Shown piece after piece: positions 1 through 24,628 of a stretch of DNA of 49,000 nt. This DNA is from Tubulanus polymorphus. Taxonomy: Eukaryota; Animalia; Nemertea. The notes beneath the pieces were generated by a model. It was not told where the DNA came from. It did no database searches and saw only the letters and a list, made by a program, of their open reading frames with translations. A program made the translations under genes and the position numbers. The stretch is taken from the NCBI RefSeq assembly GCF_964204645.1, contig NW_027437483.1:1-49000 (forward strand), given 5' to 3'. Every line of letters begins with the position of its first letter. Positions within the stretch are counted from its first letter, which is position 1.

Positions 1-3000
1 ACCTCAGCCTGTGCCAGGAATGAAGGAATGCGAGGTCACAGGAAATGACAGTCGTCGGTCTGCCCAGGTAGCTCAACTGGTAGAGCAGTCGTCCGGCAAA
101 CGAAAGGTCCGTGGTTCGAGTCCCGGTCTAGGTGGTGGACTGTGCTTTTCCCGATGCCCCTAACTCTAATGCCTTCCGACAGGTGGGAGTTAGCCTGATT
201 TCCCGCTGCCCGTGCTCTAGTGGGGAACTGAAAAAGAAATTAATTAATACATCTCGATTAACAGTCTCGGGGGTTAATCTGAAGAACACACTTGTCATAT
301 AATTAATATTCAAATTCAAAAATTGGTTCCCCTAACCTCTATCTCTATACCTAACCTCAGCCTGTGCCAGGAATGAAGGAATGCGAGGTCACAGGAAATG
401 ACAGTCGTCGGTCTGCCCAGGTAGCTCAACTGGTAGAGCAGTCGTCCGGCAAACGAAAGGTCCGTGGTTCGAGTCCCGGTCTAGGTGGTGGACTGTGCTT
501 TTCCCGATGCCCCTAACTCTAATGCCTTCCGACAGGTGGGAGTTAGCCTGATTTCCCGCTGCCCGTGCTCTAGTGGGGAACTGAAAAAGAAATTAATTAA
601 TACATCTCGATTAACAGTCTCGGGGGTTAATCTGAAGAACACACTTGTCATATAATTAATATTCAAATTCAAAAATTGGTTCCCCTAACCTCTATCTCTA
701 TACCTAACCTCAGCCTGTGCCAGGAATGAAGGAATGCGAGGTCACAGGAAATGACAGTCGTCGGTCTGCCCAGGTAGCTCAACTGGTAGAGCAGTCGTCC
801 GGCAAACGAAAGGTCCGTGGTTCGAGTCCCGGTCTAGGTGGTGGACTGTGCTTTTCCCGATGCCCCTAACTCTAATGCCTTCCGACAGGTGGGAGTTAGC
901 CTGATTTCCCGCTGCCCGTGCTCTAGTGGGGAACTGAAAAAGAAATTAATTAATACATCTCGATTAACAGTCTCGGGGGTTAATCTGAAGAACACACTTG
1001 TCATATAATTAATATTCAAATTCAAAAATTGGTTCCCCTAACCTCTATCTCTATACCTAACCTCAGCCTGTGCCAGGAATGAAGGAATGCGAGGTCACAG
1101 GAAATGACAGTCGTCGGTCTGCCCAGGTAGCTCAACTGGTAGAGCAGTCGTCCGGCAAACGAAAGGTCCGTGGTTCGAGTCCCGGTCTAGGTGGTGGACT
1201 GTGCTTTTCCCGATGCCCCTAACTCTAATGCCTTCCGACAGGTGGGAGTTAGCCTGATTTCCCGCTGCCCGTGCTCTAGTGGGGAACTGAAAAAGAAATT
1301 AATTAATACATCTCGATTAACAGTCTCGGGGGTTAATCTGAAGAACACACTTGTCATATAATTAATATTCAAATTCAAAAATTGGTTCCCCTAACCTCTA
1401 TCTCTATACCTAACCTCAGCCTGTGCCAGGAATGAAGGAATGCGAGGTCACAGGAAATGACAGTCGTCGGTCTGCCCAGGTAGCTCAACTGGTAGAGCAG
1501 TCGTCCGGCAAACGAAAGGTCCGTGGTTCGAGTCCCGGTCTAGGTGGTGGACTGTGCTTTTCCCGATGCCCCTAACTCTAATGCCTTCCGACAGGTGGGA
1601 GTTAGCCTGATTTCCCGCTGCCCGTGCTCTAGTGGGGAACTGAAAAAGAAATTAATTAATACATCTCGATTAACAGTCTCGGGGGTTAATCTGAAGAACA
1701 CACTTGTCATATAATTAATATTCAAATTCAAAAATTGGTTCCCCTAACCTCTATCTCTATACCTAACCTCAGCCTGTGCCAGGAATGAAGGAATGCGAGG
1801 TCACAGGAAATGACAGTCGTCGGTCTGCCCAGGTAGCTCAACTGGTAGAGCAGTCGTCCGGCAAACGAAAGGTCCGTGGTTCGAGTCCCGGTCTAGGTGG
1901 TGGACTGTGCTTTTCCCGATGCCCCTAACTCTAATGCCTTCCGACAGGTGGGAGTTAGCCTGATTTCCCGCTGCCCGTGCTCTAGTGGGGAACTGAAAAA
2001 GAAATTAATTAATACATCTCGATTAACAGTCTCGGGGGTTAATCTGAAGAACACACTTGTCATATAATTAATATTCAAATTCAAAAATTGGTTCCCCTAA
2101 CCTCTATCTCTATACCTAACCTCAGCCTGTGCCAGGAATGAAGGAATGCGAGGTCACAGGAAATGACAGTCGTCGGTCTGCCCAGGTAGCTCAACTGGTA
2201 GAGCAGTCGTCCGGCAAACGAAAGGTCCGTGGTTCGAGTCCCGGTCTAGGTGGTGGACTGTGCTTTTCCCGATGCCCCTAACTCTAATGCCTTCCGACAG
2301 GTGGGAGTTAGCCTGATTTCCCGCTGCCCGTGCTCTAGTGGGGAACTGAAAAAGAAATTAATTAATACATCTCGATTAACAGTCTCGGGGGTTAATCTGA
2401 AGAACACACTTGTCATATAATTAATATTCAAATTCAAAAATTGGTTCCCCTAACCTCTATCTCTATACCTAACCTCAGCCTGTGCCAGGAATGAAGGAAT
2501 GCGAGGTCACAGGAAATGACAGTCGTCGGTCTGCCCAGGTAGCTCAACTGGTAGAGCAGTCGTCCGGCAAACGAAAGGTCCGTGGTTCGAGTCCCGGTCT
2601 AGGTGGTGGACTGTGCTTTTCCCGATGCCCCTAACTCTAATGCCTTCCGACAGGTGGGAGTTAGCCTGATTTCCCGCTGCCCGTGCTCTAGTGGGGAACT
2701 GAAAAAGAAATTAATTAATACATCTCGATTAACAGTCTCGGGGGTTAATCTGAAGAACACACTTGTCATATAATTAATATTCAAATTCAAAAATTGGTTC
2801 CCCTAACCTCTATCTCTATACCTAACCTCAGCCTGTGCCAGGAATGAAGGAATGCGAGGTCACAGGAAATGACAGTCGTCGGTCTGCCCAGGTAGCTCAA
2901 CTGGTAGAGCAGTCGTCCGGCAAACGAAAGGTCCGTGGTTCGAGTCCCGGTCTAGGTGGTGGACTGTGCTTTTCCCGATGCCCCTAACTCTAATGCCTTC

Positions 3001-5298
3001 CGACAGGTGGGAGTTAGCCTGATTTCCCGCTGCCCGTGCTCTAGTGGGGAACTGAAAAAGAAATTAATTAATACATCTCGATTAACAGTCTCGGGGGTTA
3101 ATCTGAAGAACACACTTGTCATATAATTAATATTCAAATTCAAAAATTGGTTCCCCTAACCTCTATCTCTATACCTAACCTCAGCCTGTGCCAGGAATGA
3201 AGGAATGCGAGGTCACAGGAAATGACAGTCGTCGGTCTGCCCAGGTAGCTCAACTGGTAGAGCAGTCGTCCGGCAAACGAAAGGTCCGTGGTTCGAGTCC
3301 CGGTCTAGGTGGTGGACTGTGCTTTTCCCGATGCCCCTAACTCTAATGCCTTCCGACAGGTGGGAGTTAGCCTGATTTCCCGCTGCCCGTGCTCTAGTGG
3401 GGAACTGAAAAAGGAATTAATTAATACATCTCGATTAACAGTCTCGGGGGTTAATCTGAAGAACACACTTGTCATATAATTAATATTCAAATTCAAAAAT
3501 TGGTTCCCCTAACCTCTATCTCTATACCTAACCTCAGCCTGTGCCAGGAATGAAGGAATGCGAGGTCACAGGAAATGACAGTCGTCGGTCTGCCCAGGTA
3601 GCTCAACTGGTAGAGCAGTCGTCCGGCAAACGAAAGGTCCGTGGTTCGAGTCCCGGTCTAGGTGGTGGACTGTGCTTTTCCCGATGCCCCTAACTCTAAT
3701 GCCTTCCGACAGGTGGGAGTTAGCCTGATTTCCCGCTGCCCGTGCTCTAGTGGGGAACTGAAAAAGAAATTAATTAATACATCTCGATTAACAGTCTCGG
3801 GGGTTAATCTGAAGAACACACTTGTCATATAATTAATATTCAAATTCAAAAATTGGTTCCCCTAACCTCTATCTCTATACCTAACCTCAGCCTGTGCCAG
3901 GAATGAAGGAATGCGAGGTCACAGGAAATGACAGTCGTCGGTCTGCCCAGGTAGCTCAACTGGTAGAGCAGTCGTCCGGCAAACGAAAGGTCCGTGGTTC
4001 GAGTCCCGGTCTAGGTGGTGGACTGTGCTTTTCCCGATGCCCCTAACTCTAATGCCTTCCGACAGGTGGGAGTTAGCCTGATTTCCCGCTGCCCGTGCTC
4101 TAGTGGGGAACTGAAAAAGAAATTAATTAATACATCTCGATTAACAGTCTCGGGGGTTAATCTGAAGAACACACTTGTCATATAATTAATATTCAAATTC
4201 AAAAATTGGTTCCCCTAACCTCTATCTCTATACCTAACCTCAGCCTGTGCCAGGAATGAAGGAATGCGAGGTCACAGGAAATGACAGTCGTCGGTCTGCC
4301 CAGGTAGCTCAACTGGTAGAGCAGTCGTCCGGCAAACGAAAGGTCCGTGGTTCGAGTCCCGGTCTAGGTGGTGGACTGTGCTTTTCCCGATGCCCCTAAC
4401 TCTAATGCCTTCCGACAGGTGGGAGTTAGCCTGATTTCCCGCTGCCCGTGCTCTAGTGGGGAACTGAAAAAGAAATTAATTAATACATCTCGATTAACAG
4501 TCTCGGGGGTTAATCTGAAGAACACACTTGTCATATAATTAATATTCAAATTCAAAAATTGGTTCCCCTAACCTCTATCTCTATACCTAACCTCAGCCTG
4601 TGCCAGGAATGAAGGAATGCGAGGTCACAGGAAATGACAGTCGTCGGTCTGCCCAGGTAGCTCAACTGGTAGAGCAGTCGTCCGGCAAACGAAAGGTCCG
4701 TGGTTCGAGTCCCGGTCTAGGTGGTGGACTGTGCTTTTCCCGATGCCCCTAACTCTAATGCCTTCCGACAGGTGGGAGTTAGCCTGATTTCCCGCTGCCC
4801 GTGCTCTAGTGGGGAACTGAAAAAGAAATTAATTAATACATCTCGATTAACAGTCTCGGGGGTTAATCTGAAGAACACACTTGTCATATAATTAATATTC
4901 AAATTCAAAAATTGGTTCCCCTAACCTCTATCTCTATACCTAACCTCAGCCTGTGCCAGGAATGAAGGAATGCGAGGTCACAGGAAATGACAGTCGTCGG
5001 TCTGCCCAGGTAGCTCAACTGGTAGAGCAGTCGTCCGGCAAACGAAAGGTCCGTGGTTCGAGTCCCGGTCTAGGTGGTGGACTGTGCTTTTCCCGATGCC
5101 CCTAACTCTAATGCCTTCCGACAGGTGGGAGTTAGCCTGATTTCCCGCTGCCCGTGCTCTAGTGGGGAACTGAAAAAGAAATTAATTAATACATCTCGAT
5201 TAACAGTCTCGGGGGTTAATCTGAAGAACACACTTGTCATATAATTAATATTCAAATTCAAAAATTGGTTCCCCTAACCTCTATCTCTATACCTAACC
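1..5298 (+). repeat. Tandem array of 15 copies of a 353-bp unit (tRNA-headed, PLE-tailed non-autonomous element); extends beyond the left window edge
   Basis: Exact 353-bp periodicity (units start at 1, 354, 707 ... 4943). I noticed only one variant (A>G at 3414, unit 10). The last unit runs into CCCTAA repeats at 5299. Confidence 0.98.
62..134 (+). ncRNA. tRNA-like/tRNA-derived Pol III element, repeated in each 353-bp unit (GGC at the anticodon position; probably not a functional tRNA)
   Basis: A-box TAGCTCAACTGG 69-80, D stem GCTC/GAGC, anticodon arm TCGT/ACGA with loop CCGGCAA, variable loop AGGTC, B-box GGTTCGAGTCC 113-123, imperfect acceptor GCCCAGG/TCTAGGT, TTTT at 146-149. C33 instead of U33, no G3:U70 Ala determinant, irregular T stem. 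Confidence 0.85.
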
Positions 5299-5325
5299 CT
5301 AACCCTAACCCTAACCCTAACCCTA
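5292..5325 (+). repeat. Short telomeric repeat tract (CCCTAA)5-6 joining the 353-bp array to the 5'-truncated PLE copy
   Basis: cctaa ccctaa ccctaa ccctaa ccctaa cccta read directly. Confidence 0.97.
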
Positions 5326-6415
5326 GCTTTTCAACATCGCGCTGGATTTGCGGTCGAAATTCCGCGGTCAGGCTCTGTCTGACAAACTCAGAAATGTCCT
5401 ATCTAACCCACCTTCTTCCCCTTCTCATTTCAGGTCACACCACCAGGAGGCACCACCGGAGCCGAAGATTCGTCCGCCGCCGAGACCGAGCCGGAAGATT
5501 CGAAAGCCCGCGACGCCGAGGACGCCTGCACCAACCGCAGCCGCGCCCGCCGCGCCCACAGCGCCTCCTTCTTTTTCTGATTCCAGGTCACCGAGAAGCT
5601 ACGCGGATGTCACCAGGACGCCACCAACCAGAATGGCGCCACCACCGAGAAGTCCGATGCCGACGCCGCCGCCAAGAAGTCCGACGCCACCGAGAAGTCC
5701 GACGCCGCCGCCTCGAAACCCGACGCCGCCGCCGCCGCCGCAGAGAACGCCGACCGCACCAACCAGCAGTCCGACGCCGTCTCTCTCTTCTTCTCTTTCC
5801 AGCTCTCCGTCTCATTACAGGTCACCAGGGCGCCTACTGCCAGCGCGAAGTCCGACGCCAACACCGAGACCGATGGCGCCCCAGGAAGTTCGCCGTCATC
5901 CGAATACGGGTCGGAAGAAACAGGATTGGAGTCTGCCACCAACCCGGCGACCCATTCTGGTGATTGGTGACTCAAATCTGAGTAACATCACATCAAGCCG
6001 CCGTCCGGATGACGTCCAGATCGAGAGCTTCCCCGGCTGCAAGATAGCTCATCTCGCCGACCTGATCGATGCTGTACCGGAGCGCCGAGATCGCCCGGAT
6101 ACGGTGATCATCAGCGTCGGAATCAACAACCGCGACAACAACTTCGAAGCGACCGCCAAGAAGACCACACAGCGCCTGATCAACGCCGCAGTCAAGAAGT
6201 ATCAGCACTCGTTCGTCCACTTCGTTCAACTCAACACGACCCGCGAACACCAGCAGTTCGCCCGGAAGTTCAACGAATTCCTCGAGATTCACGACGACGT
6301 CACCGCGATACCACCCATCGATGATCGACGCTTCAGAGTTGTTGGAGACGGGATCCACTGGAACCGTGGTACAGCTAACACCCTGCTGGACCACTGGCTC
6401 AGTGGTTTAAACTAA
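5326..6415 (+). CDS. PLE ORF1 (5'-truncated): Pro/Ser/Thr-rich linker + SGNH/GDSL esterase domain
   Basis: SGNH blocks: ILVIGDSN (block I), FPGCKI (II), ISVGINN (III), GDGIHWN (V, DxxH). Confidence 0.85.
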
Positions 6416-8871
6416 GTATTAGTGAGACCAACGGGTCCACTATTGGTGAGTTAAATCAACCGGAATTAACCAATGCTTCTCTGATTTCTTCCATTTCCAG
6501 GTCCGACGAACACGAAGAACCGGCACCAAACCAAGCGCGACGCGATCCGGTCACCGCTCTCGGGAGCCCGGTGGTCAACCTCACACGTTCACTCCGCCTA
6601 AGTCCGGCGCAACATCAGCTACTCCGAAAGGGCCTCACTTATTGCCCGACTCCAAAAATCGGTTCTGATGCCGCCGCGACCGAGCGCACCAAGGGAGTGT
6701 GCCGATTCAACCGGCTAGTGAAACTCGACCATCACTTCCGAGACAAACCGGACCGCGAGGCTCCGCGTTTCCGTCTGCCCAGCAGTTGGGCTCCGGATGA
6801 AATAGAACCAGTAATCGCCGGGTTCTGCAACGACGCGCACGAATTGGCTCAACAAACCAGGGATACGCGTCGCGTAAATGATAACCTCACTAAACAGGAA
6901 CGCGAAGCCCTCCAGCAGCTGCGTGACAACACTAATATTGTCATCAAAGCCGCCGATAAGGGTTCCGCTACGGTTATCATGGACCGCGACGACTACGTCC
7001 ACGAAGCCATGCGCCAACTAGCCGATCTCGAGTATTATCAGCCGCTGCAGCAACCGATCTTCGAACAGACCGGGGAAGAAATTCGCGAAATCATCGAAAA
7101 TATGGCTCGACGAAAAATCATCCCGCTAAAAACCGCCGAATATCTATTACCGCCCGACAATCCGAAACAGAGGCAGTTCTATCTGCTTCCCAAAATCCAT
7201 AAAGAACGCGAGAAGTGGACGGTACCCGATCGCGTACCGCCGGGGAGACCGATCGTCTCCGACTGCGGCTCCGAAACCTACGAAATTTCGGAATGGATCG
7301 ACTACTATTTGCAGCCGATCGCCCGCGGTCACCCGTCGTACGTCAAAGATACCAACCACTTTCTAGATATTTTGGCCGGTAAACAATTTAGCGCCGATGC
7401 GTTACTCGTCACCATGGACATCGATTCGCTCTACACCAACATCCCCCACGAAGAGGGTATCGCCAGCATCCGACAAGCTCTCCGAGATAACCCGAACCCG
7501 GGACGCCCGGATGCCGAGCTGCTGAAACTACTCGAAATCAGCCTGAAGAAAAATGACTTTAACTTTAACGAAAACACATATTTACAGGTAAAAGGTACCG
7601 CAATGGGTAAGCGTTTTGCTCCTTCTTATGCCAATATCTTTGTAGCCGAATGGGAAAAAGAAGGTCTGTCCAGAAGCGAACTCCAACCATCGCTATACGC
7701 TCGGTTCATCGACGACATCTACATAGTTTGGGAACACGGCCGCGAAACGTTGATGCAATTCATCGACGTCCTACAAACAGTGAGCCGATCCATCAAACTC
7801 AAGTTCGAAATCAGCGACACCAGCGTCAACTTTCTGGACGTAACCACTTTCAAAGGCCCGCGATTCGAGACAAGTGGCACAGTAGACACCAAAGTCTACT
7901 TCAAACCAACCGATTCGCATCAATTACTACATCGATCCTCGTTTCACCCTAAACACACATTTTCCGGTATAGTTAAAAGTCAAATTCTCCGGTTCCGGCG
8001 CATCTGCAATAACGATTCGGACTTACACGCAGCGTCCGGAACCGTCCTTAAAGTACTCAGAGGTCGTGGCTACAAAGACCGCGAACTGCGACACATCAAA
8101 AGCCAAGCTCTACGGCACCACGCCGAACGAGATCTACGAGAACAACAACGGGCCGACGAACCGCCGAAAAAGCGTTTACCGCTTATCTTACCTCACTCCG
8201 AAGCCAACCGAACCCTAGCCCGTAACATCCGAACCAGATTTACGGAACTGGCTACGGCCACCGGCCGGTCGGACGAGGTAACCACGGTCACCGCCTACAC
8301 CAAGCACAAGAGTCTCAAAGATCTCCTAACTTCGTCGCAGCTCAAACCCACGAAGCCACCCCCTCCCCGAGTCCCCTCTTCACCGCATCGTAACAGAAAT
8401 ACTTCCGTTGTTTCCAATTCTTCTATTTCCAGGTCTACTCAAAGAACTCCGTCAACCCGACGTCGAGGCACCGAGAAATGCAGAACACCGAGATGTCGTA
8501 CGTGTCCACTCGTCCGAGAAACAACCGTTTGCCGCAGCCACAACAAAATGCACGCGATCCGCAGCACAATTAATTGCGCGACCCGTGAAATTGTATACTG
8601 CATCGAATGCACCAAGTGCAACATGCTGTACGTCGGCCAAACCGGAATGTCTCTACGAGAACGCGTCACTCATCACGTCTCACGCATCAGAACGAAGAAT
8701 TCGACTCCAGTCTCGGACCACTTCAACCAAGTCGACCACACCCGCGAACACTTTCGGGTGTACGGTCTCCAACACCTACCAGGCTCCACGAGACCGATCC
8801 GCGAAGCAGCCGAACAAGACTGGATACGACGACTCGACACGAACACGCCCCGAGGCATGAACGTCCCGTAG
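6412..8871 (+). CDS. PLE ORF2: reverse transcriptase + Cys-rich linker + GIY-YIG endonuclease (no ATG start; probably entered by -1 frameshift)
   Basis: RT motifs YLLPKIHK, PGRPIVS, TMDIDSLYTNI, GTAMG..FAP.YANIF, RFIDD, NFLDV. Linker CRTPRCRTC. GIY-YIG IVYCIECTKC..LYVGQT, RER..H, E..WI..L.T..P.GMN. Frame is open from 6412 to the track start at 6571 (GTG). Confidence 0.95.
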   Translation, partial: LSISETNGSTIGELNQPELTNASLISSISRSDEHEEPAPNQARRDPVTALGSPVVNLTRSLRLSPAQHQLLRKGLTYCPTPKIGSDAAATERTKGVCRFNRLVKLDHHFRDKPDREAPRFRLPSSWAPDEIEPVIAGFCNDAHELAQQTRDTRRVNDNLTKQEREALQQLRDNTNIVIKAADKGSATVIMDRDDYVHEAMRQLADLEYYQPLQQPIFEQTGEEIREIIENMARRKIIPLKTAEYLLPPDNPKQRQFYLLPKIHKEREKWTVPDRVPPGRPIVSDCGSETYEISEWIDYYLQPIARGHPSYVKDTNHFLDILAGKQFSADALLVTMDIDSLYTNIPHEEGIASIRQALRDNPNPGRPDAELLKLLEISLKKNDFNFNENTYLQVKGTAMGKRFAPSYANIFVAEWEKEGLSRSELQPSLYARFIDDIYIVWEHGRETLMQFIDVLQTVSRSIKLKFEISDTSVNFLDVTTFKGPRFETSGTVDTKVYFKPTDSHQLLHRSSFHPKHTFSGIVKSQILRFRRICNNDSDLHAASGTVLKVLRGRGYKDRELRHIKSQALRHHAERDLREQQRADEPPKKRLPLILPHSEANRTLARNIRTRFTELATATGRSDEVTTVTAYTKHKSLKDLLTSSQLKPTKPPPPRVPSSPHRNRNTSVVSNSSISRSTQRTPSTRRRGTEKCRTPRCRTCPLVRETTVCRSHNKMHAIRSTINCATREIVYCIECTKCNMLYVGQTGMSLRERVTHHVSRIRTKNSTPVSDHFNQVDHTREHFRVYGLQHLPGSTRPIREAAEQDWIRRLDTNTPRGMNVP

Positions 8872-11168
8872 ACCGCCTCACTACAACAATTAACTCTCAC
8901 TACTTTTTTACAGGGATAACCCGCTGCCCGTGCACTAGTGGGGTCTCCAAACCTTCGGTTTGGTCCCCTAACCTCTATCTCTAAACCTAACCTTAGCCCG
9001 TGCCAGGTTTCCCTCGTAAATTATCTTAACTGATTAATTATTAATCATCAATCTATTTGCAGAATCATCCTCCGTCGCCTGAAGCAGAAACCCGCTCAGA
9101 GACAGAGTACAAAACAAACTCCAAGATCACAAGCTCCACAGGAATCATCAACCTTTTATCTTTTAATTAGTTCTCTCTGCTTTACTTTGAAAACTCAATC
9201 GAAATTCAGTAAGTAAGAAGACAGACCAAATATCAGAAACAGTTAGAAAAATAAACAAAAGCGCGATATCGGGAACCGAACCCTAACCGCTAGTACAGAC
9301 TGGTTGCCTGTCCCAGGACGATAGAAACCGGTAACCAGTCCACCGCTATTATCTATTTCGAAAATATGCGTCAGCACTGAGATTATATCATAGAAACACC
9401 CGAAAAGTATTTATTAATCTATTATAAATTTAGAAAGAAAGGGAATCTAGAATAGGTAAGAATATACTCAATTACTAAAACGGCGCGCCTGATCGGGACT
9501 CGAACCCGCGGCACCCGAATTAAGCTCCGGAGAATACTCGGGAACCGTACCCGCCGCTCCGAAATTAACCGCTAGTACTGACGGGTTGCCGGTGTCCCGC
9601 GTTAGATACCGGCAACCAGTCCACCGCTCTTATTTATTTTGAAAATATGCGTCGGCACTAAGATTATATCGTAGAAACATCTGAAAAGTACTATTGTATC
9701 CGTCAAAGATTCAGAATTAAAAGGAATCCAGAATAGGTAAAAAAACATTTAGAATAGAACTATTCAATTACTAAACGGCGCCTGGTCGGGACTCGAACCC
9801 GCGGCACCCTAATCAACCTCCGTTTAATCTATAACGTTCGGTCGGGGACCTAACCCGCTACGTCCTAATTAACTATTATCGTATCTACGCGCCAACTCTT
9901 GGAACATACTCTATATAGATCCGGGTGTCAAGTTTCAAATTTCTCTAAAACAGACAGTTTATTTTCGGATAACAATTCTAATGAGATCGCTCAAAAGTAT
10001 TAGTAGCTATATTCAAAAACCGCACTATAGGTTGTAGAAGTATAAGAAGTTTATAGGATAAATAATAGTCCACGGACATCAATCACTGTTTACGAGTCAC
10101 TCATAATTAGTGACCGATCGGCCACCTGCGCCTCTTGACTAATTATCCGACTCAATTCTATACAAAATCGCAGTTACGACGCCTTCAAACTCATCAGTTT
10201 TTTTCAAAGAACACAGCCCAATATTCCCGATTCAAAAAGAGTTTTAAAATCACGTATATATTTCAACCTTCGGATTAAAGAAGAGATCATAGTGTTTTTG
10301 AACCACTCAAACTACGCAAGCTTAAACCGATTTACTGAATACCCGCGCTCCGGTCTGAATATATTTGTCACATGTTCAAGTTCACATAGCTTTACTCGAT
10401 CCTAAAAACTCTAAATAAGCGTAGTTTATCTAATAGAATTATATTTAAGAACTTAGAATTAAAACAGACTTATTAGTAAGACATTTCTATCAAAACTCGT
10501 CACCCATAATTAGGGCTAATTAACCACCCGCGCTCACTCAGTAATTTAGATCTTACGGGTTATAACTTCCTACTAAATCGCCGACGCCGCGCTGTCTAAT
10601 TCATCCAATTTTCGGTAGAATACCGCGTAGATATTTCAAAATCCGCTCTTAAAAGCTTTAGAATACGGAGAAAACTTGATTAACTAAGAACCGGATTTCA
10701 CCATTTACGACTATTTAGTAAACACGCGTATATCGGAATACGCCTCGGCCGCGCACCGCTAATTAACGCATCTAAACTAATTAGGAATTAAGCAATTTTG
10801 AAACTGAACTCGGACATATTTCGAACATTCCGGTTCACGTATATTAATAATACATATTCTAGATTTCTCTTTATAGAAAACACTTTGAGTATTTATTAGG
10901 TTATATCGAAATAAACTTTTCAATTCTATATTAGACACGCCGTTCTTTAGATCTTTAGAACTATACATCAAAGCAAACTATTCAACAGCTAGATCAAGGG
11001 CCATAATTAGTGCTGTTTTCTAGTCACTCTGGATCAAAGGCATAATTAGTCAGACCCCTAGTTTGTCTATTAGCTTGATCACAGAAGTACAATTAGTCTA
11101 GATCACAAGGTCTCATATGGTCACTTAACTTCTAACTCAAATACTGTTCACTTGTTGCGCGCTGCGTG

Positions 11169-11200
11169 TATAAAAACCCGTGTCTAATCCTAGTTCAGCA
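11169..11200 (+). promoter_or_regulatory. Putative Pol II core promoter of the PLE (TATA box + Inr-like)
   Basis: TATAAAAA at 11169-11176 with TTCAGCA about 25 bp downstream, immediately before the hammerhead and ORF1. Confidence 0.6.
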
Positions 11201-12759
11201 TGATTCCTGCACTGACACTGACGAAGGCAACCTCGCCGAAATATCTGTCAATGGAGCGATCTACTCGAAAGAAGAAACGACCACCAGCTGAGAAGACCAG
11301 CAAGGGCGGAGGACGCCCTGAGCGACACCAGCAACCCGGGATGTCGCCGAAAAATTACTATAGAGCTCTTCAAGTGGCGCACCACCTTGCCCAGTTGAGC
11401 TCTGGTCCGAAAGCGATTCGGAGGAAGAAGGACCATCTGAAGATGTTCCTGCGGCCGGCGGCTTGCACCGAAGCAGTAACGGTGCGGCTGCACGCTGCCG
11501 CGGACGTCTGGATGGAGACAGTTTCGAAAGAGCTGACCATCCATTACGCTGCCACATTTGTTGAGCTAATGGGTGATCCTCTGCCGGACTGTCTATCAGC
11601 ACAGGATGTCGCCCTGACATGGGCCCGGAGGAATTTCGGCTCCCGTCTGAGCCCCGGAACGATCCGGCTTTTCAACATCGCGCTGGATTTGCGGTCGAAA
11701 TTCCGCGGTCAGGCTCTGTCTGACAAACTCAGAAATGTCCTATCTAACCCACCTTCTTCCCCTTCTCATTTCAGGTCACACCACCAGGAGGCACCCACGG
11801 AGCCGAAGATTCGTCCGCCGCCGAGACCGAGCCGGAAGATTCGAAAGCCCGCGACGCCGAGGACGCCTGCACCAACCGCAGCCGCGCCCGCCGCGCCCAC
11901 AGCGCCTCCTTCTTTTTCTGATTCCAGGTCACCGAGAAGCTACGCGGATGTCACCAGGACGCCACCAACCAGAATGGCGCCACCACCGAGAAGTCCGATG
12001 CCGACGCCGCCGCCGCCACCAAGAAGTCCGACGCCACCGAGAAGTCCGACGCCGCCGCCTCGAAACCCGACGCCGCCGCCGCCGCAGAGAACGCCGACCG
12101 CACCAACCAGCAGTCCGACGCCGTCTCTCTCTTCTTCTCTTTCCAGCTCTCCGTCTCATTACAGGTCACCAGGGCGCCTACTGCCAGCGCGAAGTCCGAC
12201 GCCAACACCGAGACCGATGGCGCCCCAGGAAGTTCGCCGTCATCCGAATACTGGTCGGAAGAAACAGGATTGGAGTCTGCCACCAACCCGGCGACCCATT
12301 CTGGTGATTGGTGACTCAAATCTGAGTAACATCACATCAAGCCGCCGTCCGGATGACGTCCAGATCGAGAGCTTCCCCGGCTGCAAGATAGCTCATCTCG
12401 CCGACCTGATCGATGCTGTACCGGAGCGCCGAGATCGCCCGGATACGGTGATCATCAGCGTCGGAATCAACAACCGCGACAACAACTTCGAAGCGACCGC
12501 CAAGAAGACCACACAGCGCCTGATCAACGCCGCAGTCAAGAAGTATCAGCACTCGTTCGTCCACTTCGTTCAACTCAACACGACCCGCGAACACCAGCAG
12601 TTCGCCCGGAAGTTCAACGAATTCCTCGAGATTCACGACGACGTCACCGCGATACCACCCATCGATGATCGACGCTTCAGAGTTGTTGGAGACGGGATCC
12701 ACTGGAACCGTGGTACAGCTAACACCCTGCTGGACCACTGGCTCAGTGGTTTAAACTAA
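11200..12759 (+). CDS. PLE ORF1 full length (basic N-terminus, probable helical domain, Pro-rich linker, SGNH esterase); real start may be ATG 11251
   Basis: 519-aa ORF with the SGNH motifs GDS, G, GxN, DxxH intact. Confidence 0.88.
   Translation: MIPALTLTKATSPKYLSMERSTRKKKRPPAEKTSKGGGRPERHQQPGMSPKNYYRALQVAHHLAQLSSGPKAIRRKKDHLKMFLRPAACTEAVTVRLHAAADVWMETVSKELTIHYAATFVELMGDPLPDCLSAQDVALTWARRNFGSRLSPGTIRLFNIALDLRSKFRGQALSDKLRNVLSNPPSSPSHFRSHHQEAPTEPKIRPPPRPSRKIRKPATPRTPAPTAAAPAAPTAPPSFSDSRSPRSYADVTRTPPTRMAPPPRSPMPTPPPPPRSPTPPRSPTPPPRNPTPPPPQRTPTAPTSSPTPSLSSSLSSSPSHYRSPGRLLPARSPTPTPRPMAPQEVRRHPNTGRKKQDWSLPPTRRPILVIGDSNLSNITSSRRPDDVQIESFPGCKIAHLADLIDAVPERRDRPDTVIISVGINNRDNNFEATAKKTTQRLINAAVKKYQHSFVHFVQLNTTREHQQFARKFNEFLEIHDDVTAIPPIDDRRFRVVGDGIHWNRGTANTLLDHWLSGLN
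11210..11253 (+). ncRNA. Minimal type I hammerhead ribozyme (PLE-type)
   Basis: Stem I CACTGACA/TGTCAATG, core CTGACGA(A), stem II GGC-AACCTC-GCC, GAAA, palindromic mini stem III ATAT, AUC cleavage after 11245. Minimal hammerheads with palindromic stem III are an established feature of PLEs. Confidence 0.8.
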
Positions 12760-15215
12760 GTATTAGTGAGACCAACGGGTCCACTATTGGTGAGTTAAAT
12801 CAACCGGAATTAACCAATGCTTCTCTGATTTCTTCCATTTCCAGGTCCGACGAACACGAAGAACCGGCACCAAACCAAGCGCGACGCGATCCGGTCACCG
12901 CTCTCGGGAGCCCGGTGGTCAACCTCACACGTTCACTCCGCCTAAGTCCGGCGCAACATCAGCTACTCCGAAAGGGCCTCACTTATTGCCCGACTCCAAA
13001 AATCGGTTCTGATGCCGCCGCGACCGAGCGCACCAAGGGAGTGTGCCGATTCAACCGGCTAGTGAAACTCGACCATCACTTCCGAGACAAACCGGACCGC
13101 GAGGCTCCGCGTTTCCGTCTGCCCAGCAGTTGGGCTCCGGATGAAATAGAACCAGTAATCGCCGGGTTCTGCAACGACGCGCACGAATTGGCTCAACAAA
13201 CCAGGGATACGCGTCGCGTAAATGATAACCTCACTAAACAGGAACGCGAAGCCCTCCAGCAGCTGCGTGACAACACTAATATTGTCATCAAAGCCGCCGA
13301 TAAGGGTTCCGCTACGGTTATCATGGACCGCGACGACTACGTCCACGAAGCCATGCGCCAACTAGCCGATCTCGAGTATTATCAGCCGCTGCAGCAACCG
13401 ATCTTCGAACAGACCGGGGAAGAAATTCGCGAAATCATCGAAAATATGGCTCGACGAAAAATCATCCCGCTAAAAACCGCCGAATATCTATTACCGCCCG
13501 ATAATCCGAAACAGAGGCAGTTCTATCTGCTTCCCAAAATCCATAAAGAACGCGAGAAGTGGACGGTACCCGATCGCGTACCGCCGGGGAGACCGATCGT
13601 CTCCGACTGCGGCTCCGAAACCTACGAAATTTCGGAATGGATCGACTACTATTTGCAGCCGATCGCCCGCGGTCACCCGTCGTACGTCAAAGATACCAAC
13701 CACTTTCTAGATATTTTGGCCGGTAAACAATTTAGCGCCGATGCGTTACTCGTCACCATGGACATCGATTCGCTCTACACCAACATCCCCCACGAAGAGG
13801 GTATCGCCAGCATCCGACAAGCTCTCCGAGATAACCCAAACCCGGGACGCCCGGATGCCGAGCTGCTGAAACTACTCGAAATCAGCCTGAAGAAAAATGA
13901 CTTTAACTTTAACGAAAACACATATTTACAGGTAAAAGGTACCGCAATGGGTAAGCGTTTTGCTCCTTCTTATGCCAATATCTTTGTAGCCGAATGGGAA
14001 AAAGAAGGTCTGTCCAGAAGCGAACTCCAACCATCGCTATACGCTCGGTTCATCGACGACATCTACATAGTTTGGGAACACGGCCGCGAAACGTTGATGC
14101 AATTCATCGACGTCCTACAAACAGTGAGCCGATCCATCAAACTCAAGTTCGAAATCAGCGACACCAGCGTCAACTTCCTGGACGTAACCACTTTCAAAGG
14201 CCCGCGATTCGAGACAAGTGGCACAGTAGACACCAAAGTCTACTTCAAACCAACCGATTCGCATCAATTACTACATCGATCCTCGTTTCACCCTAAACAC
14301 ACATTTTCCGGTATAGTTAAAAGTCAAATTCTCCGGTTCCGGCGCATCTGCAATAACGATTCGGACTTACACGCAGCGTCCGGAACCGTCCTTAAAGTAC
14401 TCAGAGGTCGTGGCTACAAAGACCGCGAACTGCGACACATCAAAAGCCAAGCTCTACGGCACCACGCCGAACGAGATCTACGAGAACAACAACGGGCCGA
14501 CGAACCGCCGAAAAAGCGTTTACCGCTTATCTTACCTCACTCCGAAGCCAACCGAACCCTAGCCCGTAACATCCGAACCAGATTTACGGAACTGGCTACG
14601 GCCACCGGCCGGTCTGACGAGGTAACCACGGTCACCGCCTACACCAAGCACAAGAGTCTCAAAGATCTCCTAACTTCGTCGCAGCTCAAACCCACGGAGC
14701 CACCCCCTCCCCGAGTCCCCTCTTCACCGCATCGTAACAGAAATACTTCCGTTGTTTCCAAATCTTCTATTTCCAGGTCTACTCAAAGAACTCCGTCAAC
14801 CCGACGTCGAGGCACCGAGAAATGCAGAACACCGAGATGTCGTACGTGTCCACTCGTCCGAGAAACAACCGTTTGCCGCAGCCACAACAAAATGCACGCG
14901 ATCCGCAGCACAATTAATTGCGCGACCCGTGAAATTGTATACTGCATCGAATGCACCAAGTGCAACATGCTGTACGTCGGCCAAACCGGAATGTCTCTAC
15001 GAGAACGCGTCACTCATCACGTCTCACGCATCAGAACGAAGAATTCGACTCCAGTCTCGGACCACTTCAACCAAGTCGACCACACCCGCGAACACTTTCG
15101 GGTGTACGGTCTCCAACACCTACCAGGCTCCACGAGACCGATCCGCGAAGCAGCCGAACAAGACTGGATACGACGACTCGACACGAACACGCCCCGAGGC
15201 ATGAACGTCCCGTAG
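12756..15215 (+). CDS. PLE ORF2 copy 2: RT + GIY-YIG endonuclease
   Basis: Same motifs as copy 1; 2 aa differences in the track ORF. Confidence 0.95.
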   Translation, partial: LSISETNGSTIGELNQPELTNASLISSISRSDEHEEPAPNQARRDPVTALGSPVVNLTRSLRLSPAQHQLLRKGLTYCPTPKIGSDAAATERTKGVCRFNRLVKLDHHFRDKPDREAPRFRLPSSWAPDEIEPVIAGFCNDAHELAQQTRDTRRVNDNLTKQEREALQQLRDNTNIVIKAADKGSATVIMDRDDYVHEAMRQLADLEYYQPLQQPIFEQTGEEIREIIENMARRKIIPLKTAEYLLPPDNPKQRQFYLLPKIHKEREKWTVPDRVPPGRPIVSDCGSETYEISEWIDYYLQPIARGHPSYVKDTNHFLDILAGKQFSADALLVTMDIDSLYTNIPHEEGIASIRQALRDNPNPGRPDAELLKLLEISLKKNDFNFNENTYLQVKGTAMGKRFAPSYANIFVAEWEKEGLSRSELQPSLYARFIDDIYIVWEHGRETLMQFIDVLQTVSRSIKLKFEISDTSVNFLDVTTFKGPRFETSGTVDTKVYFKPTDSHQLLHRSSFHPKHTFSGIVKSQILRFRRICNNDSDLHAASGTVLKVLRGRGYKDRELRHIKSQALRHHAERDLREQQRADEPPKKRLPLILPHSEANRTLARNIRTRFTELATATGRSDEVTTVTAYTKHKSLKDLLTSSQLKPTEPPPPRVPSSPHRNRNTSVVSKSSISRSTQRTPSTRRRGTEKCRTPRCRTCPLVRETTVCRSHNKMHAIRSTINCATREIVYCIECTKCNMLYVGQTGMSLRERVTHHVSRIRTKNSTPVSDHFNQVDHTREHFRVYGLQHLPGSTRPIREAAEQDWIRRLDTNTPRGMNVP

Positions 15216-15329
15216 ACCGCCTCACTACAACAATTAACTCTCACTACTTTTTTACAGGGATAACCCGCTGCCCGTGCACTAGTGGGGTCTCCAAACCTTC
15301 GGTTTGGTCCCCTAACCTCTATCTCTAAA

Positions 15330-15444
15330 CCTAACCCTAACCCTAACCCTAACCCCCTAACCCTAACCCCCTAACCCCCTAACCCCCTAACCCCCTAACC
15401 CCCTAACCCCCTAACCCCCTAACCCCCTAACCCCCTAACCCCTA
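15330..15444 (+). repeat. Telomeric tract: canonical CCCTAA grading into variant CCCCCTAA
   Basis: Read directly; variant units lie centromere-proximal. Confidence 0.96.
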
Positions 15445-17277
15445 GAATTACACATTGCAGGTGCAAGTTGTCAAAATCTTTTAAAAGGAAAAGTAGAAAT
15501 TACACATTGCAGATGCAAATTATCAAAATCTACTTAGAGGAGAAAGTAGAAATTACACATTGCAGATGCAAATTGTCGAAATCTACTTAGAAGGGAAAGT
15601 AGAAATTGCTTATTGCAGGTGCAAGTTGTCAAAATCTACTTAGAAGTGAAAGTAAAAATTACACATTGCAGATGCAAATTGTCGAAATCTACTTAGAAGG
15701 AAAGTAGAAATTGATTATTGCAGGTGCAAGTTGTCAAAATCTTTTAAAAGGGAAAGTAGAAATTACACATTGCAGATGCAAATTATCAAAATCTACTTAG
15801 AGGAGAAAGTAGAAATTACACATTGCAGATGCAAATTATCAAAATCTACTTAGAGGAGAAAGTAGAAATTACACATTGCAGACGCAAATTGTCGAAATCT
15901 ACTTAGAAGGGAAAGTAGAAATTGATTATTGCAGGTGCAAGTTGTCGAAATCTTTTAAAAGGTAAAAGTAGAAATTACACATTGCAGATGCAAATTATCA
16001 AAATCTACTTAGAGGAGAAAGTAGAAATTACACATTGCAGATGCAAATTGTCGAAATCTACTTAGAAGGGAAAGTAGAAATTGATTATTGCAGGTGCAAG
16101 TTGTCGAAATCTTTTAAAAGGTAAAAGTAGAAATTACACATTGCAGATGCAAATTATCAAAATCTACTTAGAAGGGAAAGTAGAAATTACACATTGCAGA
16201 CGCAAATTGTCGAAATCTACTTAGAAGGGAAAGTAGAAATTGCTTATTGCAGGTGAAGTTGTCAAAATCTTTTAAAAGGGAAAGTAGAAATTACACATTG
16301 CAGATGCAAATTATCAAAATCTACTTAGAGGAGAAAGTAGAAATTACACATTGCAGATGCAAGTCGTCGAAATCTACTTAGAGGAGAAAGTAGAAATTAC
16401 ACATTGCAGGTGCAAGTCGTCGAAATCTACTTAGAGGAGAAAGTAGAAATTACACATTGCAGATGCAAATTATCAAAATCTACTTAGATGGGAAAGATAG
16501 AAATTACACATTGCAGATGCAAGTCGTCGAAATCTACTTAGAGGAGAAAGTAGAAATTACACATTGCAGATGCAAATTATCAAAATCTACTTAGATGGGA
16601 AAGATAGAAATTACACATTGCAGGTGCAAGTCGTCGAAATCTACTTAGAGGAGAAAGTAGAAATTACACATTGCAGATGCAAGTCGTCGAAATCTACTTA
16701 GATGGGAAAGATAGAAATTACACATTGCAGATGCAAATTGTCGAAATCTACTTAGAAGGGAAAGTAGAAATTGCATATTGCAGGTGCAAGTTGTCGAAAT
16801 CTACTTAGAAGGGAAAGTAGAAATTGCATATTGTAGTTGCGAGCGGTTGTCAAATTGGTTTTTGTGAAATATCCCCTCACGAACTGAGATTTTTCAATGA
16901 CTTTGAATTACAAAAATGTAGCCCATGACAACCAGCGAGATAGATTGAAAGGAGATCATACTAAACTTTTTTTCTCCGACATCGGACCGTCGATCATGGT
17001 AAGCAGTCGCAACTTGGCAAAATCTCCTTAGAAGTGAAACGTAGAAATTGCATATTGTAGCAAAGAGTTGTCAAAATCTTCTTAGAAAGTAACGTAGAAA
17101 TTACACATTGCATTCGCAAGTTGTCTTAGAAGGGAAAGTAGAAAATGCACATTGCATTCGCGAGTTGTCAAATTAGTTTTTGTGAAATATCTCTTAACGA
17201 ACTGAGATTTTTCAATGACTTTCATTTACGAAATTGTAGCCCATGACAACCAGCGCGATAGATTGAACGGAGATCAT
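15445..17277. repeat. 53-bp subtelomeric satellite with variant monomers, degenerating into a duplicated ~130-bp segment
   Basis: Unit tagaaattacacattgcagatgcaaattatcaaaatctacttagaggagaaag with 53-bp spacing (15494, 15547). Segment ~16850-16960 recurs at ~17170-17277. Confidence 0.92.
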
Positions 17278-24300: not shown

Positions 24301-24502
24301 ACATTACCTGTTTATTGGGAACGAAATCTTCATCACCAAGTTCTGACCTCGCTGCATATCCAAACTTCATCGCTTCAATAAATCTATGGTAGAATAAAGT
24401 CTGTCTCTCTGTTTGATTCAGTGTTACGCGTCTGGTTAAATATCCAGGTTTATATTGATAACCTATAGATAATATACTATAGATACAGTAAGTGTGAGCT
24501 GC

Positions 24503-24535
<33 letters not shown>

Positions 24536-24547
24536 CACAGACACACA

Positions 24548-24628
<81 letters not shown>

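Follow-up and report, generated by a model that had tools for sequence, protein, structure and literature searches.

The window analysed here is the entire unplaced 49,000-bp contig NW_027437483.1 (hereafter C66) of the 268-Mb genome assembly of the nemertean Tubulanus polymorphus. Its first 15,444 bp form a chain of two kinds of element, an endonuclease-bearing (EN+) Penelope-like element (PLE), here called PLE-1, and a short partner resembling a short interspersed element (SINE), here called SINE-A, both joined to CCCTAA telomeric repeats. The original prediction, made from the letters of the window, had read this arrangement as a telomere-targeting PLE system, and that reading was supported by our analysis; the refutation tests proposed along with it were run and did not overturn it. 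The predicted order of parts (353-bp units, CCCTAA repeats, truncated PLE, full PLE, proximal tract, satellite) was recovered with every part in its place, as listed below.

4–5298, plus strand: SINE-A array, 15 complete 353-bp units joined head-to-tail (ACCTAACC followed by TCAGCCTGTGCCAGG)
5004–5076, plus strand: tRNA-like module of the last SINE-A unit (Rfam RF00005), recurring each 353 bp upstream (e.g. 4651–4723)
5299–5325, plus strand: short (CCCTAA)n tract between the SINE-A 3' end and the 5'-truncated PLE
5326–8992, plus strand: PLE copy 1, 5'-truncated at element position ~2675 inside open reading frame 1 (ORF1)
8993–15336, plus strand: PLE copy 2, full length (6,344 bp), head TTAGCCCGTGCCAGG directly after the tail of copy 1
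8993–11199, plus strand: AT-rich 5' untranslated region of 2.2 kb, with a TATAAAA motif at ~11170
11200–12759, plus strand: ORF1 (519 amino acids), an N-terminal domain without match, a proline-rich linker and a C-terminal SGNH/GDSL esterase
12750–12756, plus strand: U_UUA_AAC slippery heptamer, a predicted -1 frameshift site, in frame and just upstream of the ORF1 stop
12756–15215, plus strand: ORF2, in the -1 frame, with reverse transcriptase (RT), CX4CX2C linker and GIY-YIG endonuclease
15216–15336, plus strand: 3' tail, with box CCCGCTGCCCGTGCACTAGTGGGG, a hairpin closed by GGGG/CCCC and a terminal segment of ~24 nt
15337–15444, plus strand: proximal telomeric tract, (CCCTAA)~3 and then (CCCCCTAA)~11
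15446–16840, no strand assigned: 53-bp subtelomeric satellite in 26 copies, bordering the chain on its inner side

Tandem Repeats Finder described the SINE-A array (1–5298) as a repeat of period 353 with 15.0 copies and 99% matches. The units start at positions 4, 357 and so on to 4946; 14 of the 15 are identical and one carries a single substitution, and the contig start interrupts one more unit, of which bases 1–3 are the end. The tract at 5299–5325 holds ~4.5 CCCTAA repeats past the element's own ACCTAACC, and a search of the window for (CCCTAA)3 gave 6 matches against 0 expected. PLE copy 1, which is 99.5% identical to 11667–15336 of the full copy, retains the frameshift site (6406–6412), the complete ORF2 (to 8871) and the tail, and it is joined head-to-tail to copy 2 without a telomere repeat (ACCTAACC followed by TTAGCCCGTGCC). 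The claim that both elements point the same way and share a fusion motif was borne out, as both element types end in CCTCTATCTCTA[T/A]ACCTAACC, fused in register to the telomere repeat (CTAACCC...). In the proximal tract, positions 15353–15442 consist of about eleven 8-nt CCCCCTAA repeats, and the assembly has no other place with three such 8-mers in a row.

The predicted identity of the autonomous element as an EN+ PLE was confirmed by ORF2, which carries both an RT domain (Pfam RVT_1, 32.2 bits against a cut-off of 29.6, at ~13740–14150) and a GIY-YIG domain (~14934–15179). The endonuclease is conserved: nine relatives retain its GIY, internal CC, YIG, R, H, E and N positions, and the alignment follows the pattern VY-C..C-YVG, R, H, H, E, N (internal CCHH motif). 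The zinc-finger linker reads CRTPRCRTC in the window, CDTPRCKTC in the related protein P0002 and CGQRRCGAC in P0019, and homologues of ORF2 carry DUF8422, RVT_1, HTH_animal and GIY-YIG. The best protein match to ORF2 was P0001, an NCBI protein from Tubulanus polymorphus with 97% identity. An uninterrupted 830-amino-acid ORF2 frame, with the RT fused to GIY-YIG, was present in at least 48 genomic copies.

The esterase of ORF1 (~12295–12756) was recognised by the blocks GDSN, G, GINN and D..H, aligned with those of relatives; the Pfam esterase match of the window's own ORF1 was weak (E 0.013), and two relatives, L058 and L059, exceed the Pfam Lipase_GDSL_2 cut-off. The sense part of ORF1 ends in UUA AAC with a U before it, and the -1 frame is open for 819 codons onward. 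An in-frame U_UUA_AAC with an open -1 frame was also found in the relatives L058, L059 and L063, and L062 has U_UUU_UUA. Because of the in-frame heptamer, the open -1 frame and the same arrangement in relatives, we read ORF2 as being made as an ORF1-ORF2 fusion via predicted -1 frameshifting; the legend to figure 1 of a published PLE study mentions frameshifts for some PLEs (PMC8557442). An intron joining ORF1 and ORF2 was considered and dropped, since no GT donor lies in the right phase. The 5' leader contains a 281-bp internal duplication (window 9319–9743) and two minus-strand fragments, one per duplication copy (9485–9529 and 9778–9822), that resemble the 3' half of a tRNA (GGTTCGAGTCCC...) and may be an old antisense SINE insertion.

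The terminal segment of the PLE tail carries CCTAACC twice, 19 nt apart. The same layout of box, hairpin and terminal segment was found in SINE-A, in a second short partner (SINE-B), in a second PLE family (PLE-2) and in L058. The head of each family is a direct repeat, not a complement, of a motif in its own 3' box: head GCCCGTGCC and box GCCCGTGCA in PLE-1, head ACCAGTGCC and box GCCAGTGTC in SINE-B, and head GCCTGAGCC and box GCCTGAGCA in PLE-2.

SINE-A (353 bp) and SINE-B (337 bp) are ~80% identical. Their units consist, in order, of a PLE-like head of ~15 nt, the tRNA-like module, TTTT, a conserved hairpin, the PLE 3' box, a long arm closed by GGGG/CCCC and the PLE terminal segment. The heads (T[C/T]AGCC.GTGCCAGG, or CCGACCAGTGCCAGG) resemble the PLE head, and the tail common to SINE and PLE comprises the box CCCGCTGCC.GTG...GTGGGG and the terminus GGT.CCCCTAACCT.TA.CTCTA.ACCTAACC. 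The tRNA-like module (unit positions ~59–131) scored 47.3 bits with Rfam RF00005 against a gathering score of 29; ARAGORN called no tRNA in the window, and the module was detected by the Rfam model only. It is nearly invariant between SINE-A and SINE-B, whereas the flanks differ, and a TTTT run lies ~13 nt past its end. The short unit had been predicted to be tRNA-headed. The tRNA-like module is present, but that description is inexact because the tRNA-like part is internal: the head is PLE-like, and the module starts at ~nt 59 and not at the 5' end as in a SINE with a tRNA-derived head.

SINE-A arrays with units identical to those of C66 were also found at C10:10402–15973, C8:2943–5309 and C34:12166–12841. 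Each readable SINE array opens with a 5'-truncated unit (positions 31, 77, 105 and 119, and ~24 in SINE-B), which is followed by full units and then by a telomere tract. This anatomy would fit repeated switching between templates, or a single RT run on a template that is multimeric or circular. At C5:16624918 a tail of PLE type leads into a SINE-A head, a heterologous junction. Illumina reads from another sample (run X5) contained mini-derivatives in tandem, made of a 29–47 nt head and a 92–302 nt tail, which narrows the cis-requirements to the two ends. At C2:3727925–3728345 (L081) lies a short element that has a variant box (CGCGCTGCCCGTGCGGCGGGTGG) but agrees with the PLE in its terminal 40 nt; it may represent another non-autonomous family.

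Genome-wide, the census consisted of exact-pattern counts of the 21-nt 3' terminus, and junctions were otherwise read as small samples. The exact terminus occurred 156 times in the assembly, against 0 for a control pattern; 47 of the 156 continue into CTAA (telomere) and 64 into an element head, so that 111 enter telomere repeats or the next copy's head. All 19 sampled junctions were telomeric or head-joined. Every 5'-truncated PLE copy that was read has telomere repeats before it, at many truncation points. PLE copies are 99.3–100% identical to each other, full-length copies recur at 6.34–6.35 kb spacing on C4, C54 and C63, and in the window, on C10 and on C4 a full copy is immediately preceded by a truncated one.

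Contig C10 starts with 1,323 bp of pure CCCTAA. The chain behind it opens with an inverted PLE fragment, which is followed by 64 bp of tail and a full PLE. Next come 17 bp of telomere repeat, a PLE starting from an internal GCCTAA and 16.8 SINE-A units in an array, and after these 110 bp of telomere repeat, two SINE-B units, more telomere repeat and a truncated PLE. The inverted fragment (C10:1329–1420, L035) is 92 bp long, corresponds to element positions ~5843–5934 and lies between the terminal tract and the outermost PLE. The copy at C10:10393 is the one that begins at the internal GCCTAA, fused to telomere repeats. C8 likewise starts with telomere repeats, followed by SINE-A and PLE. C4, C9, C34 and C65 begin inside such chains; in C54, C63, C32 and C7 the chains lie near the contig end and are oppositely oriented. 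The expected polarity was thus observed, copies being on the plus strand at contig starts and on the minus strand at contig ends. The chromosome-end location that had been claimed holds for these same chains behind the terminal tracts of C10 and C8; for C66, which is unplaced and begins inside an array, we infer a terminal position from those two contigs. In every element the sense strand runs on into the C-rich strand, and therefore first-strand cDNA was joined to the 3' end of the G-strand. Tracts proximal to elements are mostly 8–110 bp, against at least 1.3 kb for terminal tracts.

Copies were also found away from contig ends. Two short interstitial copies, C3:16.02 Mb and C6:22.37 Mb, are embedded in unique DNA between short telomere-like tracts, and copies at C3:16.17 Mb and C2:16.50 Mb adjoin degenerate telomere-like satellite. 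Slightly diverged PLE 3' ends with one and the same non-telomeric flank (CCGCCCCGATTCCCGG...) were seen at C11:350082, 424158, 504104, 1970533, 2050411 and 2135824 and at C9:990942 and 1547965 (labelled L086, L088, L089, L095, L097 and L098), spaced roughly 75–85 kb apart; they look like one old insertion amplified in a very large repeat. The final 19 nt of the PLE tail are repeated, as (CCTAACCTCTATCTCTAAA)n, in interstitial arrays at C2:8928444–8928582 (L099/L104) and C9:256990–257735 (L103), partly interleaved with CCCTAA-type hexamers. Either slippage or reiterative copying at the RNA 3' end could have produced these arrays, and the tail layout, with two CCTAACC motifs 19 nt apart after a hairpin, would allow telomerase-like realignment. 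Telomerase_RBD matches above the cut-off on C5 mark the host telomerase gene.

The junctions were examined in X5, a 2026 Illumina run of another sample, of which ~1.93 Gb were read (~7x) and mapped on window positions 4590–10589, with 5276–5333 masked, which places the SINE-telomere-PLE junction of C66 outside this check. The junction classes seen in the assembly were reproduced. Summed depth climbed smoothly from ~230–280 over the 5' leader to ~1,150 at the 3' end, corresponding to ~33 full 5' ends against ~160 3' ends, and this gradient is the signature of 5'-truncating reverse transcription. About 150 reads pass from the PLE terminus into telomere repeats, and ~155 pass into the same-flank interstitial sequence of the C11/C9 type. 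Many joints lead from the terminus through 6–22 nt of telomere repeat to varied internal PLE positions. One of them, to window position 6257, was covered by 10 reads with 8 different starts, and the assembly contains nothing that matches it, also when one mismatch is tolerated. The ends of the assembly are incomplete, but the joint probably reflects an insertion that differs between individuals.

Related elements were found in T. polymorphus and in other organisms. L058, from another sequencing run, has 61% amino acid identity in ORF2, and the genome of the window has nothing closer to it than PLE-1. It shares the esterase ORF1, the frameshift site, the CX4CX2C-GIY-YIG arrangement, the box and a tail that runs into CCCTAA repeats, with a different hairpin sequence (GGGGAACC/GGUUCCCC). 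L063 (39%) also ends in CCCTAA repeats, and L110/L111 and L106/L107 (~40%) have CCCTAA-like C-rich tails. The plankton-derived L059–61 keep the esterase and the frameshift and show no telomere repeat in the assembled part. PLE-2, a second related two-ORF family with 53% identity to P0002, occupies C4:49586–57354 (L100, L101) within the terminal chain of that contig, in tandem copies spaced by 5,513 bp, with a head (CAGCCTGAGCCGG), box and tail (...CCCCCAACCTCTATCCCTAAAACCTAACC) of its own. A system of two components had been proposed; the pairing of a PLE with a short partner stands, but the count is at least four (PLE-1, PLE-2, SINE-A and SINE-B), with the mini head-and-tail derivatives in addition. 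On the inner side of the chain in C66, the DNA at 16841–49000 is dense in unrelated mini- and microsatellites, typical of subtelomeric texture, among them a 12-bp unit x141 at 21754–23447, CAGA x250 at 24502–25472 and a 46-bp unit x45 at 31297–33513.

We consider, with a probability of about 80%, that PLE-1 represents a young PLE family, probably still active, that is specialised for telomeric repeats and spreads by telomere-repeat-primed reverse transcription, with its short partners copied in trans. The 48 or more copies with an open ORF2 and the near-identity of the copies speak for its youth. The RNA would end, after the hairpin, in a single-stranded ...CCUAACC-N12-CCUAACC, a segment able to pair with the G-rich strand (TTAGGG)n, and the 3'-OH of the G-strand would prime reverse transcription. 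At chromosome ends the primer would most likely be the natural or eroded G-strand terminus, and at internal telomere-like tracts it would most likely be a nick made by the element's own GIY-YIG endonuclease. The C10 copy begun at the internal GCCTAA shows that a match of 5–6 nt would suffice for priming. Synthesis of cDNA would often stop early and leave 5'-truncated copies, and telomerase would re-cap the new end with CCCTAA before the next round, which would yield co-oriented chains. On reaching the 5' end of the RNA, the RT may switch to another template RNA, which would yield head-to-tail arrays without telomere repeats. The protein would be made in gag-pol style, with the ORF1 esterase followed, after a -1 frameshift at U_UUA_AAC, by the ORF2 RT and endonuclease. 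SINE-A and SINE-B would be copied in trans by the PLE RT onto the same targets, presumably arriving as multimers through multimeric or circular templates or by repeated template switching.

Whether the element adds to ends or inserts into them bears on the role of the endonuclease. In the manner of TRAS1/SART1, the family could be a purely site-specific integrator, whose GIY-YIG nicks the G-strand within telomeric tracts; all copies, those at chromosome ends among them, would then arise by endonuclease-driven target-primed reverse transcription, the element would never extend a free end, and telomerase would have no role at its 5' junctions. The endonuclease is indeed intact and conserved, the interstitial copies sit within short telomere-like tracts with repeats on both sides, and the outermost DNA of C10 and C8 is a long pure telomere tract with the elements inside it. 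Random nicking in long tracts should, however, leave longer remainders than the short proximal tracts that were measured, internal priming at a 5-nt match beside a 10-bp tract fits a short free end better, and the anatomy of the chains equals that of the EN-lacking Athena/Terminons (PMC6431247). We therefore regard pure integration as possible but doubtful. Because the proximal tracts are short relative to the terminal ones and the anatomy is that of the EN-lacking elements, free or eroded ends are favoured as primers for the terminal chains. Interstitial copies would need an internal 3'-OH, of which the endonuclease would be the obvious source, and double-strand-break repair would also serve. 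Sequence alone cannot separate end addition from endonuclease-driven insertion. A bolder view, which we think unlikely, is that the lineage is a living intermediate between intrachromosomal EN-using PLEs and telomerase-like RTs that extend ends. One protein would then both nick telomere-like DNA and extend free G-strand ends, and the RNA 3' end would serve as a telomerase-like template with two CCUAACC alignment sites 19 nt apart and a hairpin as its boundary. Reiteration over this template would produce the 19-nt repeats mixed with CCCTAA on C2 and C9, and in the tRNA-like partners host tRNA-processing signals would take the place of the retrozyme hammerhead in making unit-length or circular templates.

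Several observations weigh against telomere-primed retrotransposition with trans-copied partners. No RNA data set contained the elements, whether for transcription, RNA ends or circular forms, and no transposition event was caught in progress. The Pfam score of the GIY-YIG domain (21.3 bits) lies below its cut-off of 22.6. No ribozyme was found that would define the RNA 3' end: no Rfam family matched at E<=1 over 4500–16000, nor at E<=10 over the junction and the unit, by models that minimal PLE hammerheads could escape, and manual reading of CUGA.GA/GAAA motifs gave no convincing ribozyme. The folds of single tails are weak (z-scores -1.4 to -2.0), and RNAalifold on four tails gave no meaningful consensus fold, because MAFFT left the hairpins out of register; we therefore claim only the recurrent layout of the tail. 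The TTTT run just past the tRNA-like module argues against an RNA polymerase III transcript of the whole unit. C66 is unplaced and has no terminal telomere tract. Among the exact 3' termini, 45 of 156 are neither telomeric nor head-joined; 20 of these were read, and they comprised several groups with common flanks, each of them therefore one old insertion carried inside a larger repeat, others with degenerate telomere-like sequence after the terminus, and a few tiny fragments beside CCCTAA runs. Finally, identical compound units, each a short telomere tract and a PLE with one and the same truncation point, stand in tandem on C34 (1965/7058/12151, 5,093 bp spacing), C65 (19042–31551, 4,150 bp) and C30 (1021–10229, 4,592 bp), so that recombination or read-through templates also enlarge the chains.

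These tandem compound units would equally be expected if the elements were mere subtelomeric repeats, in which an old insertion was homogenised by unequal exchange or break-induced replication, with no current retrotransposition and with the 353-bp unit a plain satellite. The 100% identity of 353-bp units across C66, C10, C8 and C34 and the amplification of PLE tail fragments within larger repeats on C11 and C9 point the same way. This explanation is nevertheless highly improbable in view of the many distinct truncation points, each capped by telomere repeats, the smooth 5'-to-3' increase in depth, the large number of uninterrupted ORF2 copies, the differing truncation of first array units, the junction that is present in another individual and absent from the assembly, and the same tail-telomere fusion in a relative of 61% identity from another organism. 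As for the order of parts in C66, it might be an assembly chimera produced by highly similar repeats, given that the contig is a 49-kb unplaced one starting in a repeat array, that the reads were masked over its SINE-telomere-PLE junction and that no single piece covers the entire stretch. We find this hardly credible, as the same kinds of junction in the same order appear independently on C10, C8, C34 and C4 and the junction classes recur in the independent Illumina run; the general conclusion is, moreover, independent of C66.

The Tubulanus PLE was set against Athena/Terminons, Coprina and Neptune by architecture and motifs, from published descriptions. With Athena/Terminons, the EN-lacking PLEs of bdelloid rotifers, and with Coprina it shares co-oriented chains at chromosome ends, 5'-truncated copies with short telomere caps, head-to-tail arrays, a reverse-complement telomeric 3' end after a 3'-terminal fold, two ORFs and accessory functions that include a GDSL esterase (PMC6431247, PMC5408684, PMC8557442). 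Unlike Athena/Terminons, it has a conserved GIY-YIG fused to the RT, only ~1.2 built-in telomere repeats and a length of 6.3 kb, so that it is not giant; no hammerhead was detected, the host is a nemertean with TTAGGG telomeres, and short partners bearing a tRNA-like module are present. Telomere attachment and capped truncations are thus those of Athena/Terminons, but the endonuclease that those elements lack is present. With Neptune-type EN+ PLEs it shares a C-terminal GIY-YIG with internal CC...H...H, a linker of the CX2-5CxxC type (here CX4CX2C), which defines the Neptune and Nematis endonucleases, and tandem or partial-tandem (pseudo-LTR) insertions, including the inverted fragment on C10 (PMC8557442). 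According to their descriptions, Neptune-type elements have a single ORF and hammerhead motifs and insert within chromosomes at (TA)n or AT-rich targets, whereas the Tubulanus PLE has two ORFs, an esterase, a frameshift and telomere-repeat targets. Of the features of a PLE, the RT, the GIY-YIG with CCHH and the tandem arrangement were found and the hammerhead was not.

Other retroelements are also associated with telomeres. TRAS and SART, a functional analogue from a different class, coexist with telomerase repeats and use their endonuclease on them, and HeT-A is non-autonomous and depends on the RT of another element. The Tubulanus elements resemble TRAS1/SART1 of Bombyx and HeT-A/TART/TAHRE of Drosophila in being telomere-confined with fixed polarity (PMC5537684). 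That group differs in its long interspersed element (LINE) class of RT, its APE endonuclease and its poly(A) tails or lack of tails, and it has neither a telomere-complementary 3' end nor a tRNA-like partner. tRNA-derived SINEs, whose tRNA-like part has A and B boxes, pair with LINEs via a common 3' tail. SINE-A and SINE-B likewise combine a short tRNA-like element with the 3' tail motif of an autonomous partner, but here that partner is a PLE, the tRNA-like part lies within the unit and ahead of a TTTT run, the partner has the 5' head in common with them as well, and the units form multimeric arrays on telomere repeats and not dispersed monomers. The nearest analogues of the short units are non-LTR retrozymes, non-autonomous derivatives of PLE pseudo-LTRs. 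Like these units, retrozymes are tandem units of a few hundred bp from PLE termini, and PLE RTs are presumed to copy them, possibly through rolling-circle reverse transcription (bioRxiv 10.64898/2026.07.22.740005; PMC7761336). Retrozymes are hammerhead-defined and dispersed in intergenic DNA; in the Tubulanus units, which are in tandem and PLE-terminus-derived as well, no hammerhead was found, a tRNA-like module is present instead, and the location is telomeric.

In the published division of PLEs, elements with one ORF and an endonuclease are intrachromosomal, and elements with two ORFs and no endonuclease are telomeric (PMC6431247, PMC8557442). The Tubulanus PLE crosses this divide, with two ORFs, an esterase, a fused endonuclease and strict attachment to telomere repeats. 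Full-text literature searches, with most subscription journals outside their coverage, returned no EN+ telomeric PLE and no PLE with SINE-like partners. As a two-ORF EN+ family is telomeric in a telomerase-bearing animal and its relatives have a telomeric tail, loss of the endonuclease is no precondition for telomere specialisation. SINE-A and SINE-B may be the first SINE-like partners of a PLE, with a tRNA-like module, and the PLE supplies a clean, conserved predicted -1 frameshift signal. The chains explain the unresolved state of several chromosome ends in the assembly, and the family offers a tractable system for asking how a telomerase-related RT chooses telomeric 3' ends.

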